DNA of 64,000 nt from Paragordius varius (taxonomy: Eukaryota; Animalia; Nematomorpha). Positions within the stretch are counted from its first letter, which is position 1. The number at the start of each line of letters is the position of its first letter. The position numbers and the translations under genes were made by a program. Under the pieces are notes generated by a model. It did no database searches. It was not told the origin of the DNA and saw nothing but the letters and a program-made list of their open reading frames with translations. This document shows, in pieces, positions 7,986 to 48,053 of the stretch. The DNA lies in contig OZ176054.1 in NCBI GenBank assembly GCA_964247055.1, positions 11,408,001 to 11,472,000 on the forward strand, in the 5' to 3' direction.

Positions 7986-9616
7986 ACGCTTTTGTCAATG
8001 TTTTTATGTCCCCATCATGCTCAGCTTTTTTTATAAAAATTTAATTTTTTACTTACTAAAAAAATAATTTAGAAACGTGACACTTTGATAATAATAAATA
8101 TAAATGATAGAGAATCAGTTTTATGGTGATTTTAGTATTATATGCCAATTCTCAATATCAGCAGCTTAAATTACAAAGGGTAATCAAAATATTATGATAA
8201 AATATATGTTTTGGTTGAAACAATAATCATGTTTATTTTGTTTTTGGTTACAGGTAAGGTAAGAAAATATATATAATAAATTTACGGTAGCTGCTTAAAA
8301 TGTGAATTTAGCCCATGTCAAATAGATTTTTTTTCATAAAAAATTGATAAAATTTGGTGGAGAGGAAATTGTTAATAAAATGAATTGTGTTTACCTAGCA
8401 TTAATTATTTAAATTACCTATAAAATTGATTATATGGTTTTATTGATGGATTATTGGGGTATTATTCTATTAATCTTGCAAAAACTATGATAAAAACCAT
8501 ATATAATTTCATAAACTTTTTAATTAGTGTGTTTACCCTAAACTAATTAATTATTTAAGGTTTTAACTTTGGTATTTAAAAGGTATTCTTATGATTTATA
8601 ATTCAATCTTCTGAAAAAATATTGTTTTGCATGTAAGACTGTTATTTATAAAAAAAACAATTTTCTGCACACGGTCATGACACCGTTCTTTTATTTTATA
8701 TTTAAGAAAGTAGTAATAGAAAAAATATCACAGTCGCCACAAAAATACGCTGTTGAAATATATATTCTGATAGATATATATATATATATATCAGATTATC
8801 ATCCTTTTGGTCTTGGATCTTACAAATAATGGTCCATAATGGTGAAATTTCGCTTATTTTGTTTAAAAAAAGTTGGTGAAAACTACTTCTACCAAACATT
8901 ACTATATATCATAAACCACCTTTTAGCTTGCAATGAATAAATTCTATTTAGAAAAATGTGTGCAAACCTTGTCATATTCTGATATGGAGTAGCCATCACA
9001 AAAGTGTTAAAACTTTCTTTCCCTTTTAACCAAAAGGACCATGTAATAGAAAAATATCAGGATGATTATGGTGCTTGGGTTCTGACCCTTATGAGTGATT
9101 TAAGAAAGTTTCACACTTTTGCGATAAGGGATCCATATCAGGAAGGCAAGTAATTTTTTTGAAAGCTAATTCATCCCAAAAATCACTAATATACATAATT
9201 AACTACCTATTAAAAGCTAAACTATATTTAAAAAATTAATTTTTAAATCTAGGCCCGAACCCCCCCTTTACCACCCTTTTAATATGTATTTCCTTTAAAA
9301 TAAACTCTATAAGGCCGAGAGTGCGATGAAAATTTTAAATAGATGCTAAAAATATCAACAAAGAATCTTTTTTAAAAAATGCGGTTTTTCGAAATTTTAT
9401 TTGTAACAGAACTTTGTTAAAGTGTATTTCATACAATTTTTACGCATGATGGAAACGGTAAAAAATGCTTAACGATATTAAAATACTGTAACTATATAGT
9501 GATGCTGAATATTATCAGCTCATTTTGAATAAAATATTCATTTGTGTATTTATGTCAAATATAAATTCTTAGAATATCACAAATTTTTTAGCGGAAAACG
9601 CCATTTCTTTATAGTA

Positions 9617-9840
9617 AATATTTAACATATTATGGAGATTATTTCTCGTAGACTACCTTTGCAATTAGAAGTTATAGTACTTCCTATCAAGCAATAGGTG
9701 GCTTTTATGAAACGAAAATTTAAAGGGGACAGTGTTTACCACGTGTCATAGTGTGAGACGCGTTTCGTCCTTGTTGTGGACTCATCAGCCACACATAATG
9801 AACACGGGTAACCACTGTCGTTCATAATATGTTAAATATT
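9617..9840 (-). mobile_element. Short Penelope-like (pLTR-type) insertion bounded by an 18-bp inverted repeat and carrying a hammerhead ribozyme
   Basis: aatatttaacatattatg (9617-9634) is the exact reverse complement of 9823-9840. The segment is absent from the homologous positions of the other block A copies (~33960, ~47570). The Penelope assignment is inferred from the ribozyme type only; no RT/GIY-YIG coding sequence is visible. Confidence 0.55.
9751..9794 (-). ncRNA. Minimal type I hammerhead ribozyme
   Basis: The minus strand reads GUGUGG-CUGAUGA-GUCC-acaacaa-GGAC-GAAA-CGCG-UC-UCACAC. It has the complete catalytic core, stem II GUCC/GGAC, a palindromic minimal stem III (ACGCGU), and stem I GUGUGG/UCACAC. 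The predicted GUC cleavage is between 9757 and 9756. Confidence 0.88.
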
Positions 9841-10414
9841 AAATATAAATTCTGTTTTTTCCAAAAATAACTCAAAATTAATTCTGAAGGATAGAAATGT
9901 TCTGTCAAAAATTGTTAAATAAATTTTTGCATTACATTTTCATCCCCAAAATGAGAATATGTATTATAATATGTGAATAGAAATCCGTTAAGAACCGGAT
10001 GTTAAAAACCGACTGATTCCATTAAATGTTTTTTAACCCGCCATAAATTACCCATCTTCTGGTTTCGCTTTCTTGGCATTATTATAAACTAATTATAGGT
10101 TTCAATCGCCCATATAAACATACACCATAAAACAAATTGAATAAGAGTGAAATTCATATTTAAGCGCAAATAATAAAAGGGTTAATTAAGAGTAAATAAA
10201 CATTTTTAAGACAATGATAAAAAAAGCCGTTGTGTTTAGTACATTTATGCCTTTTTGCAAAAAGGTGTCAATATACTTCTTAAGATTTCTATTAAAAGAA
10301 TCGTAATTCAACGCCCCTTAAAATAACGCTTGTGAAATTACACCACTAGCTCTTTTTTTTCTACAACACCAGGTTATAAAGGATCTGTTGATAGACACTT
10401 AAATGAGTAATTTA

Positions 10415-11891
10415 TTATAAATTTTTGGTTAAACGTGGTCTGTGTAATGGAAACATGCATGGAAAAAATTTGGATTGCAAAGGATGATTGCTTAAATTTG
10501 TATCATAGGTATAGTGATAAGTGGATGCATTTAAAGTTTTTAATGTTTCGGCTTCTTGGGGAAAAACTGAGGAAATTGAAAATCCTGGATCGGAAGAATA
10601 TTTTTTCGGATAAAATTGATCACCACTTTGTACACTACTTGTATTATTATAATGATCTGAAAAGCTATGATAAATGGTACCAGTTGTATAATCTCTATTT
10701 AGTTTTGGATATAAGTTTGAGTGCTTTGAAGTAATACTATCATTTGAAAATTTGTAATCAACAAGTGTTTTGTAATTGAATTTGAGATTACCTAATCATA
10801 AAATTATCAATAAATATAAATATAAACAAATAATTTTTAATTTATCATTTAATATTGTTAAGAATAAATACTATGGCTTAATAATGGTGAAGTAAATTGT
10901 ATAGCCAATAACACTGCTTTTATTGTAAATCACATCCACCAATTAAATCAAAAACACAATTCGTATAAAATTTTTAATATGTATAACAACTTTTTAATTT
11001 TAACAGTTCGGCTTACCGGTTGACCGGACATGATATAAGATTCGTTAAACCTAGGTCTCTGTTTTCCAATCATGGTAAATCGACACGCATTGCGCATTGA
11101 ACAATTTTACTCGAGCGCAAATATTTTGGGGGAAAAATCTGCAAAAACTATTCATAATTCGATTAAAAATAAATTGTTTTTAGGGTCCAGTAACTAATTT
11201 ATCATATTAGGCACCAATAGGCTTAACGAGCATTTGCAACGCCCGGTTCATGATTCCTGTATAGCGTTCCCTATTTGCTATTAACAAATTTCAAGCATAA
11301 ATAAAAATATCTTAATTAGTGCCACTTTATTTTTGGCGCTACGAAAAATGTGTGCAAGAAATAAAAAACAAAATACTTTTAACATCAGTCAAATTGATAG
11401 GCGAGGATTCTATATAATCTTGATAATCAAAATATTCATTAGAATTGGTATGAGTCTTATGCTTGTCAAAACTATGGTATTTTGTATGGTCAAATCCAAA
11501 CTCATCATCAAAGTACGGATATTTCAATTCACTGTATATTACAATTAACATTATAACCTTTTTATAGCATCAACTTCTACAGTCTCAGTATCGCATTCTG
11601 TAGTTTCGATTTCTACGCTTCCCATATTATGATTGTTTAGTTGCCTTTTAACAGAACATTTGTCTGTATTTTATAATATTAATATAAATAAAAACCGTGG
11701 AATCTAAAATACACTGATAAACCAAGAAGTAAAATGCATAGCAGATATAGAATAAAATATAAATATATAATTTTATTATCAGGTTTGTCAATTATATCAA
11801 GAATGTTCTATTATTTTATATATCATTGGTAGGTGTTGTTTTACACTCGCAACAAACGGGAACTCAGTTTTTAGATACGGGCACTCGGTTT
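10415..11891 (-). CDS. Uncharacterised single-pass membrane protein, partial multi-exon model (exons 11891-11845, 11807-11696, 11663-11558, 11531-11377, 11338-11326, 11270-11228, unresolved exon(s) ~11140-11010, terminal exon 10791-10415)
   Basis: GT-AG introns of 37, 32, 26, 38 and 55 nt join phase-compatible exons into an open frame: TECPYLKTEFPFVAS|NILDIIDKPDNKIIYLYFILYLLCILLLGLSVYFRFH|DKCSVKRQLNNHNMGSVEIETTECDTETVEVDAIK|SELKYPYFDDEF...INLTDVK|TPKIK|ERYTGIMNRALQML. A 377-nt stop-free terminal exon follows an AG acceptor. The paralogue near 48-49.5 kb conserves most splice sites and shows synonymous changes. Confidence 0.6.
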
Positions 11892-33339: not shown

Positions 33340-34790
33340 AAAATAACAAGAATGTCATGACCTAGGTCTAAATCTGATTTATTTTTTAATGAGAATAAAT
33401 AATGTCCAAAAAAATACCCTGTTGAAATATTATTCTGATAGATAAATATATCATGATTATTATGCTAGTCTTGGATTTTACAAAGGGAAGTTCTCCATAT
33501 CAGAAAATAAAAAAATTTACGCTTATTTATTTCTTTTGGTGCCATAACTATATATCACAAACCTTTTTCTTGCACGAAAAAAAATTCAGCAATATGTGTG
33601 CAAATCTTGGCACTTATGTGGAGTGGTTACCACAAAAATGTTTACAACTTTCTTTCACTCGTAACCAAAGGCACCATGATGATTCTGATATATTTTTTTT
33701 GAGAATATATATATGAATTTTAAATAAATAATTTTAATATTAACAAAGAGTAGTTAAAAAAAGCTGTTTTTTTCAAAATTATTTTCAGAAAAACGTTGTA
33801 GCTTACTTCATACAATTTAAGCCTAATGGAGACGGTATATAAATGCTTAAAGATGCTAGAATATAATCAGATTATTTAGAATATATTCGTTTGTGTTTAA
33901 ATTTATGGTAAACATAGAGTTTTTTTACAAAAATTACTCAAAATTTTAAAGGCAAACAATTTTTTTATTAAATAAAGGATAGAAATGTTCAGCATCCTAA
34001 AATGTTTAATGTATTTTCATTCATCCCTAAAATGAAAATAAATATTACATTATATGAATAGGAATCCGTTAGAAACCGGAGCTAAAAAACCGACTGACTA
34101 CAATAATGTTTTTTTAAACCCGCCATAAATTTCCCATCTTCTAATTTCCCTTTCTTGACAATATTATTAACTATATATCATTTTCAATCGAACACATAAA
34201 CATACACCATAAACATTTTGAATTATAGTGTTATTCATATTTAAGCGCAACTATGAAAAGGGTTAATTAAGAGTAAATAAACATTTTTTAAGAGAATGAA
34301 AGGTTAAAAATGCCGTTGTGTTTGGTACATTTATGCCTTTTTGCCAAGGTGTCAATACAACATTTCTATCCATTTCTATTAAAAGAACCGTAATTGAACG
34401 CCCCTTAATATAACTGTGAAATTACACCACTAGCTCTTTTTTTCAAACACCAGGTTATTAAAGGATCTGTTGAAAGACACATAATTGAGTAAATTTATTA
34501 TAATTTTTTGGTTAAACGGGGTCTGCAATGGAAACATGAATGGAAAAAAATTGGATTGTAATTGATGATTGCTTAAACTTTATCATAGGTATAGTGATAC
34601 GTGGACGCATTTAAAGTTTTTGAAGTTTTGGCTCCTTGGGGAAAAACGGAGGGAATTAAAAATCCTGGATCGGAAGAATATTTTTTCGGATTTATCATCA
34701 CTTTGTACACTACTATTATAATAATCTAAATAGATATGATAATGCCAGTTGTATAATTTTTATATTGATTATTGTACTACTTTTGAATCC
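33340..34790 (+). repeat. Segmental duplication block A, truncated copy, including a decayed terminal exon of the unknown membrane-protein gene (~34500-34760, - strand)
   Basis: Colinear with 8650-10700 and 46540-48300 (e.g. ggatctgttga.agacac, atggaaacatg..tggaaaaaa, aaatcctggatcggaagaatatttttcgga). Confidence 0.8.
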
Positions 34791-45994: not shown

Positions 45995-48053
45995 ATAATA
46001 GATAAAATATACATTATAGCGTGTAAGTTCAAATCCATTTTTTTTATTTTGATATTTTTATAGTTATCTAGCTAATTTAAAAAAAGAAAGTTTCTGTGCG
46101 TATAAAAAATTTGAAATAGATTTGAAGAATTAATTTATTTGATGAATTCTCTTAATAAATTTATTATTAATAAATAAAATTAGTTAAATTTTTGTATAAT
46201 TAATAATAGTAAAACGCATAAATAGTTAATATTTTAAAAACAGTCATATATGAAACAAAATATCAGTTATGAGTAAAAAATTTTACTATGTCCTTTTTAT
46301 CTAAATTGGGGGTATCCAACACTAATGGCTTCGCGGGTCGCATTATAAAATATAACAAATGCATCAATAAGTATTTTAACATATATCAAACATAGGACAA
46401 AAATGAAATTATAACCCTATTTATCTACTTTAATTTTTGTTATTTTAGGAACATTTTGAAAAAACATAATAAGATTCACATATTAAATAAGTAAATTTAT
46501 CCTAAAAATTATTTGAATACATTCACGCTTTTCGCATATAAAAAAATAACAATTTTCTGTGTACGGTCATGACAGGACACCCGTCTAAATCTGATTTGTT
46601 TTATATTTTAGAGATATTACAATGTCCACAAAAAAATACCCTGTTGAAATATTATTCTGATAGATAAATATATCATGATTATCATGCTTTTGGTTTGGAT
46701 TTTACAAAGATAAGTGCTCCATATCAGAAAGTGGAAAAATATACGCTTATTTTTTTAAAAAATTTCGGTGTAAAATATTACTATATATCGCAAATCACCT
46801 TTATCTTGTACCGAAAAATTTATTCAGCAATATGCGTGCAAATCTTGGCATTTCTGATGTGGAGTAGTTACCATAAAAGTGTTTTTAACTTTTTTTCACG
46901 TAATTAAAAGCACCATGATAATCTTGATACAATTTTAATGAGAATATATATATATATATATATATTTCCTCAGGTTTTATACTTATGCCCCTTGATTGTG
47001 ATCATGTGTAAAAATAAGACACCCACAAAAAATCTAGATATATAAGATAGAAAAATGATTATTATGGTGCTTGGGTTTTAGCCTTTATGAGTTATTTGAG
47101 AAAACATTTTTGTGATAAGGGGTCTATATTAGGAAGGCAAAATAAATTTTTGTTGAAACCTACACCCCAAAAATCACTAATATATATTATAAACACCTAT
47201 AAAAAGCTAAATTATATTAAAAAAATTAATTTTTATATATAGGCTTGAAACAAATTTTCCCGTATATAATGGTCTAGTTCTTTTAAAATAAAGGCAATAA
47301 TGCCGAAGGAGTGTGATAAAAATTTCAAATAAATGTTAAATTTTAACTCGTTTTTAAGAAAGCTGTTTTTTCAAAAATTTTATTCACACAATTTTTAAGC
47401 ATGTAAACGGTATAAAAATGTTTTAAAATATTATAAAAACACTTTATATATATAATAATGCTGATTATAATCAGCTTATTTTGAATAAAATACCGTTTGT
47501 CTTGAAATTTATTAAATATAGAGTTTTTCCACAAAAAATACTCGAAATTTTAACGGCAAACAAATTTTTTAATTAAAAAGGATAGAAATGTTATGTTTTT
47601 TGCATTGCATTTTCATCCCTAAAATTGGAATAAATATTACATTATATGAATAGAAATCCGTTAGGAACCGGATATTAAAAAACGACTGACTACAGCAAAT
47701 GTTTTTTTAATACGCCATAAATTACCCATCTTATTATAAACTAATTAAAATTTTCAATCGACCATATAAACATACAGCATACAAAAATTGAAGCGCAACT
47801 ATGAAAAGGGTTAATTAAGAGTAAATAAACATTTTTTAAGACAATGATAGGTTAAAAAAGCCGTTGTGCTTAGTACATTTATGCCTTTTTGCAAAAAGGT
47901 GTCAATACAATACTTCTTTCTATTTTTATATCAAAAATATCGTAGTACAACGCACTTAATATAACGCTTGTAAAATTAGACCACTAGCTCTTTTTTTCTA
48001 CAACACTAGGTCGTTAAAGGATCTGTTGATAGACACTTAAATGAATAAATTTA

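Follow-up and report, generated by a model that had tools for sequence, protein, structure and literature searches.

Within the window, by which we mean the whole 64,000-nucleotide stretch of Paragordius varius DNA analysed here, one of the three copies of a duplicated segment (block A) carries a small insertion, on the minus strand of which an original prediction, made from the letters alone, placed a self-cleaving hammerhead ribozyme at the tip of a long hairpin. The question raised by this locus is what kind of sequence arrived there, by what means it was inserted, and whether it does anything in its present position. Our answer, which we consider very probably correct, is that 9570-9840 represents a dead-on-arrival, 5'-truncated copy of a protein-less retroelement of ~475 nt, inserted in trans by the machinery of a Penelope-like element (PLE) and probably inert. 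The locus itself, a neutral-looking transposon fragment, matters little; it provides a clean invertebrate case of a canonical, retrozyme-type hammerhead element that bears the physical footprint of Penelope-type integration.

Dissection of the minus strand at 9751-9794 yielded a complete type I hammerhead. The CUGAUGA core occupies 9788-9782 and is followed by helix II, in which GUCC (9781-9778) pairs with GGAC (9770-9767) at 4/4 positions around the loop ACAACAA; GAAA lies at 9766-9763 and is succeeded by CGCG (9762-9759), U16.1 (9758) and C17 (9757). Helix I is formed by GUGUGG (9794-9789) and UCACAC (9756-9751), with 6/6 positions paired, one of them as G-U. All conserved positions of the catalytic core (C3 U4 G5 A6 N7 G8 A9, G12 A13 A14, A15.1-U16.1 and H17) are present between 9788 and 9757. 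The topology is that of type I, with helices I and II paired and the open end at helix I, and helix III consists of one A-U pair (A15.1-U16.1) capped by a palindromic CGCG tetraloop. The ribozyme and its hairpin comprise the following features:

9735-9807, minus strand: type I hammerhead ribozyme motif (full-length match to Rfam HH9, 33.4 bits; helices and core dissected)
9756-9757, minus strand: predicted self-cleavage site, after C17 at 9757 (from the position of GUC relative to the core)
9729-9818, minus strand: long imperfect hairpin formed by extension of helix I, the ribozyme being at its tip (minimum free energy -41.9 kcal/mol, z = -4.95)

The intact core that had been claimed here (CUGAUGA, stem II, GAAA and a GUC site) is therefore present in every part, and the position of GUC relative to the core predicts the same cut, between 9757 and 9756, that had been proposed. 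The description of the motif as a minimal type I hammerhead with the palindromic stem III typical of PLE pLTRs holds for the palindromic helix III and fails for the minimal type: the layout is the canonical metazoan one, with A15.1-U16.1 and a palindromic tetraloop (PMC4209133, PMC7229834), whereas the helix-III-less 'min-HHR' is the form found in most PLE pLTRs (PMC4209133).

A search with the Rfam hammerhead models, which had been suggested as a check, recovered Hammerhead_HH9 (RF02275) over the full length of the model, with an E-value of 1e-6 in a scan of 451 nt and of 5.7e-5 when the whole 110.5-Mb genome was scanned. Its score of 33.4 bits lies below the Rfam gathering score of 52 for HH9, which is why a scan of the whole window at the gathering threshold returned no match. 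The motif resembles HH9 in its full-length alignment, in the equal lengths of helices I and II and in similar loop 1 and loop 2 sequences; it differs in its lower score and in the replacement of the model's helix III hairpin by a loop-less palindrome. Members of HH9 are conserved single-copy motifs of amniotes and not repeats, unlike the family to which the window motif belongs. The hammerhead motif is real and no chance match. Weak matches to mir-2008, SNORD5 and CncR1 in Rfam were rejected as noise, having 14-20 bits against gathering scores of 55-93.

That stem I extends into a long hairpin with the ribozyme at its tip, as originally predicted, was confirmed by folding: shuffles of the ~90 nt at 9729-9818 gave -25.6 +/- 3.3 kcal/mol, and 0 of 200 were as good as the native sequence. 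Two subfamilies of the element share this hairpin. Their identity reaches 94% over the hairpin block of ~99 nt and drops to 59-70% in the flanks, a disparity suggesting either that source copies keep the hairpin under constraint or that this module was exchanged recently. Copies of the family are too similar to one another for covariation analysis. The genome contains another hammerhead (L085, from C5:3395257) that shares the architecture of the window motif without being related to it in sequence; it too has a GUC site, together with a long extended hairpin of its own. Its helix I pairs GUCGUA with UGCGAU, most pairs being changed on both strands relative to the window ribozyme; its helix II pairs GUGC with GCAC, one C-G being swapped to G-C; and its helix III palindrome is ACUAGU. 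Helices I and II are thus retained in this second motif through compensatory changes.

The insert that carries the ribozyme runs from 9570 to 9840 (271 bp), and not from 9617 as had been proposed. Both ends are abutted by a perfect 13-bp target-site duplication, AAATATAAATTCT. From left to right, the insert and its flanks contain:

9557-9569, no strand: 13-bp target-site duplication, left copy (a direct repeat identical at 13/13 positions to 9841-9853; single at the empty sites in block A copies 2 and 3)
9570-9822, minus strand: main arm, derived from the ~475-nt ORF-less element by 5' truncation and retaining the element's true 3' end (BLAST, 88-96% identity to family copies)
9570-9616, minus strand: 47-nt 3' tail, present on one arm per insertion (comparison of arm ends at 12 composite loci)
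9617-9634, minus strand: left arm of the 18-bp inverted repeat, lying within the main arm (reference 417-434, by comparison with the reference copy)
9823-9840, plus strand: vestigial second inverted arm, a sense copy of reference 417-434 that forms the right arm of the inverted repeat (by comparison with the reference copy)
9841-9853, no strand: right copy of the 13-bp target-site duplication (direct repeat with 9557-9569)

The main arm corresponds to positions ~227-481 of a reference copy of the family (L003:1500-1985, minus strand), and many family copies end at one 3' position, equivalent to window 9569/9570. Beyond 9822, other copies carry a different and mutually conserved sequence instead of the window's right arm, which places the 5' truncation of the window copy near reference position 227. 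The perfect inverted repeat of 18 bp said to bound the insert does exist, but it fails to bound the insert on the left, where its arm is internal and lies 47 nt from the end of the element.

Such a repeat might recall a MITE, and a weak match to mir-2008 (19.7 bits, E = 0.2) might recall a microRNA-like hairpin, yet the chance that either describes the insert is next to nil. Other family copies have a different 5' end and not the right arm of the repeat, while their target duplications are of 8-22 bp and not of fixed length; variable duplications, 5' truncation and a repeat arm that is not terminal exclude a MITE, and the mir-2008 score is far under its gathering score of 93.

When 9570-9853 is removed, block A copy 1 becomes collinear across the junction with copy 2 (47436-47632) and copy 3 (33852-34040). 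Since the insert has no counterpart at these empty sites, which align straight through, the alignments indicate that it arrived after the duplication of block A, in agreement with the absence from both other copies and the late arrival originally claimed. A different reading of the left flank, prompted by its likeness to block A copy 2, took 9557-9616 for target sequence that had been duplicated; it was ruled out, as family copies on other chromosomes have these 47 nt as their 3' end. Separately, we observed that part of the element's tail (window 9575-9612) resembles a stretch of ~20-30 nt at 47545-47585 and 33955-33990, for example TTTTAGCGGAAAAC versus TTTTAACGGCAAAC; this stretch lies just to the right of the empty site in copies 2 and 3 and is missing in copy 1. 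The likeness could be a coincidence in AT-rich DNA, or the trace of microhomology or of a deletion at integration.

The insert belongs to a family that is dispersed dozens of times in the genome, and an element of this kind has already been described. BLAST of window 9560-9900 against the genome (110.5 Mb) found at least 67 matching segments on 11 contigs, and BLAST of the full reference copy at least 72, both figures being lower bounds, since scoring covered 40 of about 171 candidates. Searched as an exact word, the core (CUGAUGAGUCCAC, 4-6 nt, GGACGAAACGCGUC) was recovered 33 times in the genome against 0 in the reversed control, and HH9 has 36 matches genome-wide, so that the search for related hammerhead copies elsewhere, suggested with the original prediction, gave a positive result. 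Within the 64-kb window there is one family copy only. A full-length element of ~475 nt consists of a ~415-nt unit, the last ~60 nt of which are repeated at the 5' end as a terminal direct repeat. The unit (415 nt, 35% GC) contains no ORF and its monomer RNA is structured (z = -4.7). At least five arms start at one 5' position, reference position 7, and the 3' end of the element is fixed; at one locus (L002/L034) a unit of ~414 nt is accompanied by a 9-bp duplication. The window copy retains 61% of the unit and one ribozyme.

A copy of subfamily B (L078:701-1240), which has a 13-bp target duplication, lies inside a repeat of more than 2 kb (L078:1-2201; also L077, L079, L080 and L081) that is common to at least five loci at 87-92% identity; this copy was therefore multiplied as part of a larger duplicated unit or of a host transposon. 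Short ORFs around it gave no relevant Pfam match.

How the family is inserted is suggested by the arrangement of its copies. Two arms lie head to head at 12 other composite loci (L032, L033, L034, L036, L038, L039, L042, L043, L045, L046, L048 and L051), where one arm ends near reference 481 (459-486), the other at 428-441, and the 5' break points are variable. The second arm measures 244-466 nt at other loci, with extra length where it runs on into a partial tandem, and at L039 the layout is that of the window, with a long arm and one of ~19 nt. Clear target duplications of 8-22 bp were found at L034, L036, L038, L039, L040, L043, L045 and L051. Altogether, flank repeats were clear at about 9/17 other loci checked; at the remainder the best flank repeat was short, of low complexity or off the boundary, and was not convincing.

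PLE insertions are described as strongly 5'-truncated, as forming partial tandems, and as having an inverted and likewise 5'-truncated copy adjoining the 5' end and a tail of 30-40 bp at one end only (Craig et al. 2021, PMC8557442); an earlier study noted hammerheads in pairs, one on each strand, separated by 100-700 bp (Cervera and de la Pena 2014, PMC4209133). The window and the 12 composite loci display 5' truncation, an adjacent inverted and 5'-truncated arm, a one-sided tail and a duplication of variable length. The family further resembles hammerhead-bearing PLE pLTRs in its partial tandem and in a small palindromic helix III that is thought to act as a dimer; its tail is 47 nt long against the published 30-40 bp. 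It differs from them in having a canonical, loop-bearing ribozyme and not the helix-III-less min-HHR, in lacking an RT-EN ORF, and in showing no similarity to the PLE ORF loci sampled. In the mechanism that we favour, an element RNA whose long hairpin is tipped by a canonical type I hammerhead of the metazoan kind would be copied into the genome by a PLE reverse transcriptase and GIY-YIG endonuclease acting in trans, and the footprint left behind would be a main arm with the true 3' end, an inverted second arm (here of 18 nt), the 47-nt tail on one side and the 13-bp target-site duplication. We infer mobilisation by PLE proteins from this footprint and not from a demonstrated partnership.

Candidates for such machinery are present, and the suggestion that Penelope elements be sought elsewhere in the genome was answered in the affirmative. 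There are 20 GIY-YIG matches in the genome, several of them as head-to-head pairs; one ORF of 485 aa combines RVT_1 with GIY-YIG, and two ORFs of 743 and 787 aa, on contigs C1 and C6, are 95% identical and possess a YVDD motif and a cysteine-rich GIY-YIG region. Intact EN+ PLEs thus apparently exist in this genome. The two longer ORFs are located at L073:5346-7709 (minus) and L074:6589-8820 (plus), and the head-to-head arms at the latter locus (L074:5115-6657 versus 8954-7410) are 99.8% identical, which suggests recent activity.

A search for links between the hammerhead copies and Penelope ORFs had also been suggested as a check. Both are present in the genome, but BLAST of the unit against 15 PLE (GIY-YIG) loci produced chance-level matches only, and no autonomous PLE sharing the family's sequence was found there. 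No canonical hammerhead was seen in the 3' UTR of the 743- and 787-aa ORFs, and an Rfam scan of 30 kb from three PLE loci gave no hammerhead at E <= 0.01; no GIY-YIG lay within 60 kb of family copies among the matches listed, and no ORF adjoins the family copies. These results bear on the possibility that an autonomous PLE left the insert behind as a solitary terminal repeat after extreme 5' truncation, in which case it would not belong to an independent ORF-less family. Canonical PLEs do carry hammerheads in their pLTRs and their insertions are mostly 5'-truncated (PMC8557442, PMC4209133), and intact PLE ORFs are at hand in the same genome. We nevertheless judge such an origin improbable: the shared starts and fixed 3' ends of the family arms delimit a discrete ~475-nt unit with target duplications of its own, ORFs do not adjoin the copies, and the sampled PLE loci offered neither similarity nor a hammerhead.

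Two further observations concern GIY-YIG loci. At a decayed locus (L067), a min-HHR-like motif occurs in both inverted arms, at 2113 (plus) and 782 (minus), with CUGAUGA, a short helix II, GAAA and no helix III; its flanks can pair as helix I, and its helix II begins with U-G and not G-C. Near the starts of contigs C7 and C28 (L070:2576-3100 and L072:2575-3100), tandem repeats of ~33 nt with CTGACGACGG adjoin GIY-YIG matches within 10 kb of the contig ends, and may constitute a subtelomeric satellite associated with PLEs.

In axolotl, hammerheads in which one base pair and a palindromic tetraloop make up helix III reach 6% cleavage after an hour as monomers, whereas their dimers cleave efficiently (PMC7229834). 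With helix III reduced to one pair and a palindrome, efficient cleavage of the window motif is likewise expected only when two copies pair, which they would do through helix III, ACGCGU on ACGCGU. Folding of two monomers with RNAcofold did not recover the textbook dimeric hammerhead, an expected outcome of no evidential weight, since nearest-neighbour energies do not model the core. Since the insert has a single ribozyme, its helix III requires a partner, and the 64-kb window contains no other copy, we expect inertness except where a transcript of the insert pairs in trans. From these considerations we infer both dimer-dependent cleavage and inertness, and the window copy is probably catalytically silent and without function at its locus.

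The original prediction suggested an effect on the 3' end of a neighbouring transcript. Such a role could be imagined in the predicted micro-intron gene upstream on the same strand (10415-11891, minus), if read-through transcripts were cut at 9757/9756, possibly after pairing in trans with transcripts of other family members, so that the ribozyme shaped their 3' end. The insert does lie on the minus strand, the strand assigned to the gene in the original prediction, and no AATAAA or ATTAAA is found on that strand from 10415 to 9841 (575 nt, 27% GC), which makes read-through into the insert conceivable. We give this exaptation very little credence, however: the predicted gene showed no long ORF, a single ribozyme with a one-pair helix III should cleave poorly as a monomer, the two paralogous block A copies are without the insert, and the copy resembles any neutral member of its family. 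Were it true, one of three paralogues would have a ribozyme-defined 3' end.

There remains the relationship of the family to retrozymes. The original prediction proposed a non-coding pLTR or retrozyme-like mobile RNA, a view supported by the abundance of hammerhead-bearing copies, the presence of PLEs with intact ORFs and the PLE-type footprint; attached RT-EN ORFs and direct tandems were not found. Like metazoan non-LTR retrozymes (Cervera and de la Pena 2020, PMC7229834), the family has a canonical type I hammerhead with a 6-bp helix I and a 4-bp helix II, a non-coding, AT-rich unit of a few hundred nucleotides, target duplications of more than 4 bp, and PLEs in the same genome; its one-pair helix III capped by a palindromic tetraloop is shared with HHR_Amex1. 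The 415-nt unit stands at the upper edge of the published range of 170-400 nt. Unlike those retrozymes, the window-type ribozyme does not occur in direct tandem repeats: genome-wide there are 0 direct pairs at a spacing of 395-487 nt, all close pairs are inverted, and the only tandem in the family is a partial one of 1.15 units, its copies being otherwise dispersed monomers or head-to-head inverted pairs.

This arrangement also weighs on the proposal that the locus is an active retrozyme, whose transcripts would cleave themselves and circularise into a small circular RNA. The type I hammerhead and the structured, AT-rich, non-coding unit are as reported for retrozymes (PMC7229834), and a sister family in the genome forms direct tandems. 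Even so, activity of this kind is exceedingly unlikely here, where 61% of a unit with one ribozyme cannot supply two cleavage sites and the family lacks direct pairs at the required spacing; on its own, such a 5'-truncated monomer is unable to give rise to a circular RNA.

In a broader proposal, animal retrozymes are regarded as non-autonomous derivatives of PLEs, as argued from co-occurrence and from pLTR phylogeny in vertebrates (bioRxiv 10.64898/2026.07.22.740005). The insertion footprints described here fit that view, and they support the idea of retrozymes as passengers of PLEs with insertion architecture, a kind of evidence that the preprint does not report. The genome holds, besides this family, the sister family represented by L085, which forms direct dimers and one trimer with a period of ~452 nt at seven places (for example, G000:C4:11695938-11696834), so that two lifestyles can be compared within a single genome. 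The sister hammerhead at L085:1031-1140 (minus), with helix II GUGC/GCAC and the palindrome ACUAGU, has an arrangement that is truly retrozyme-like.
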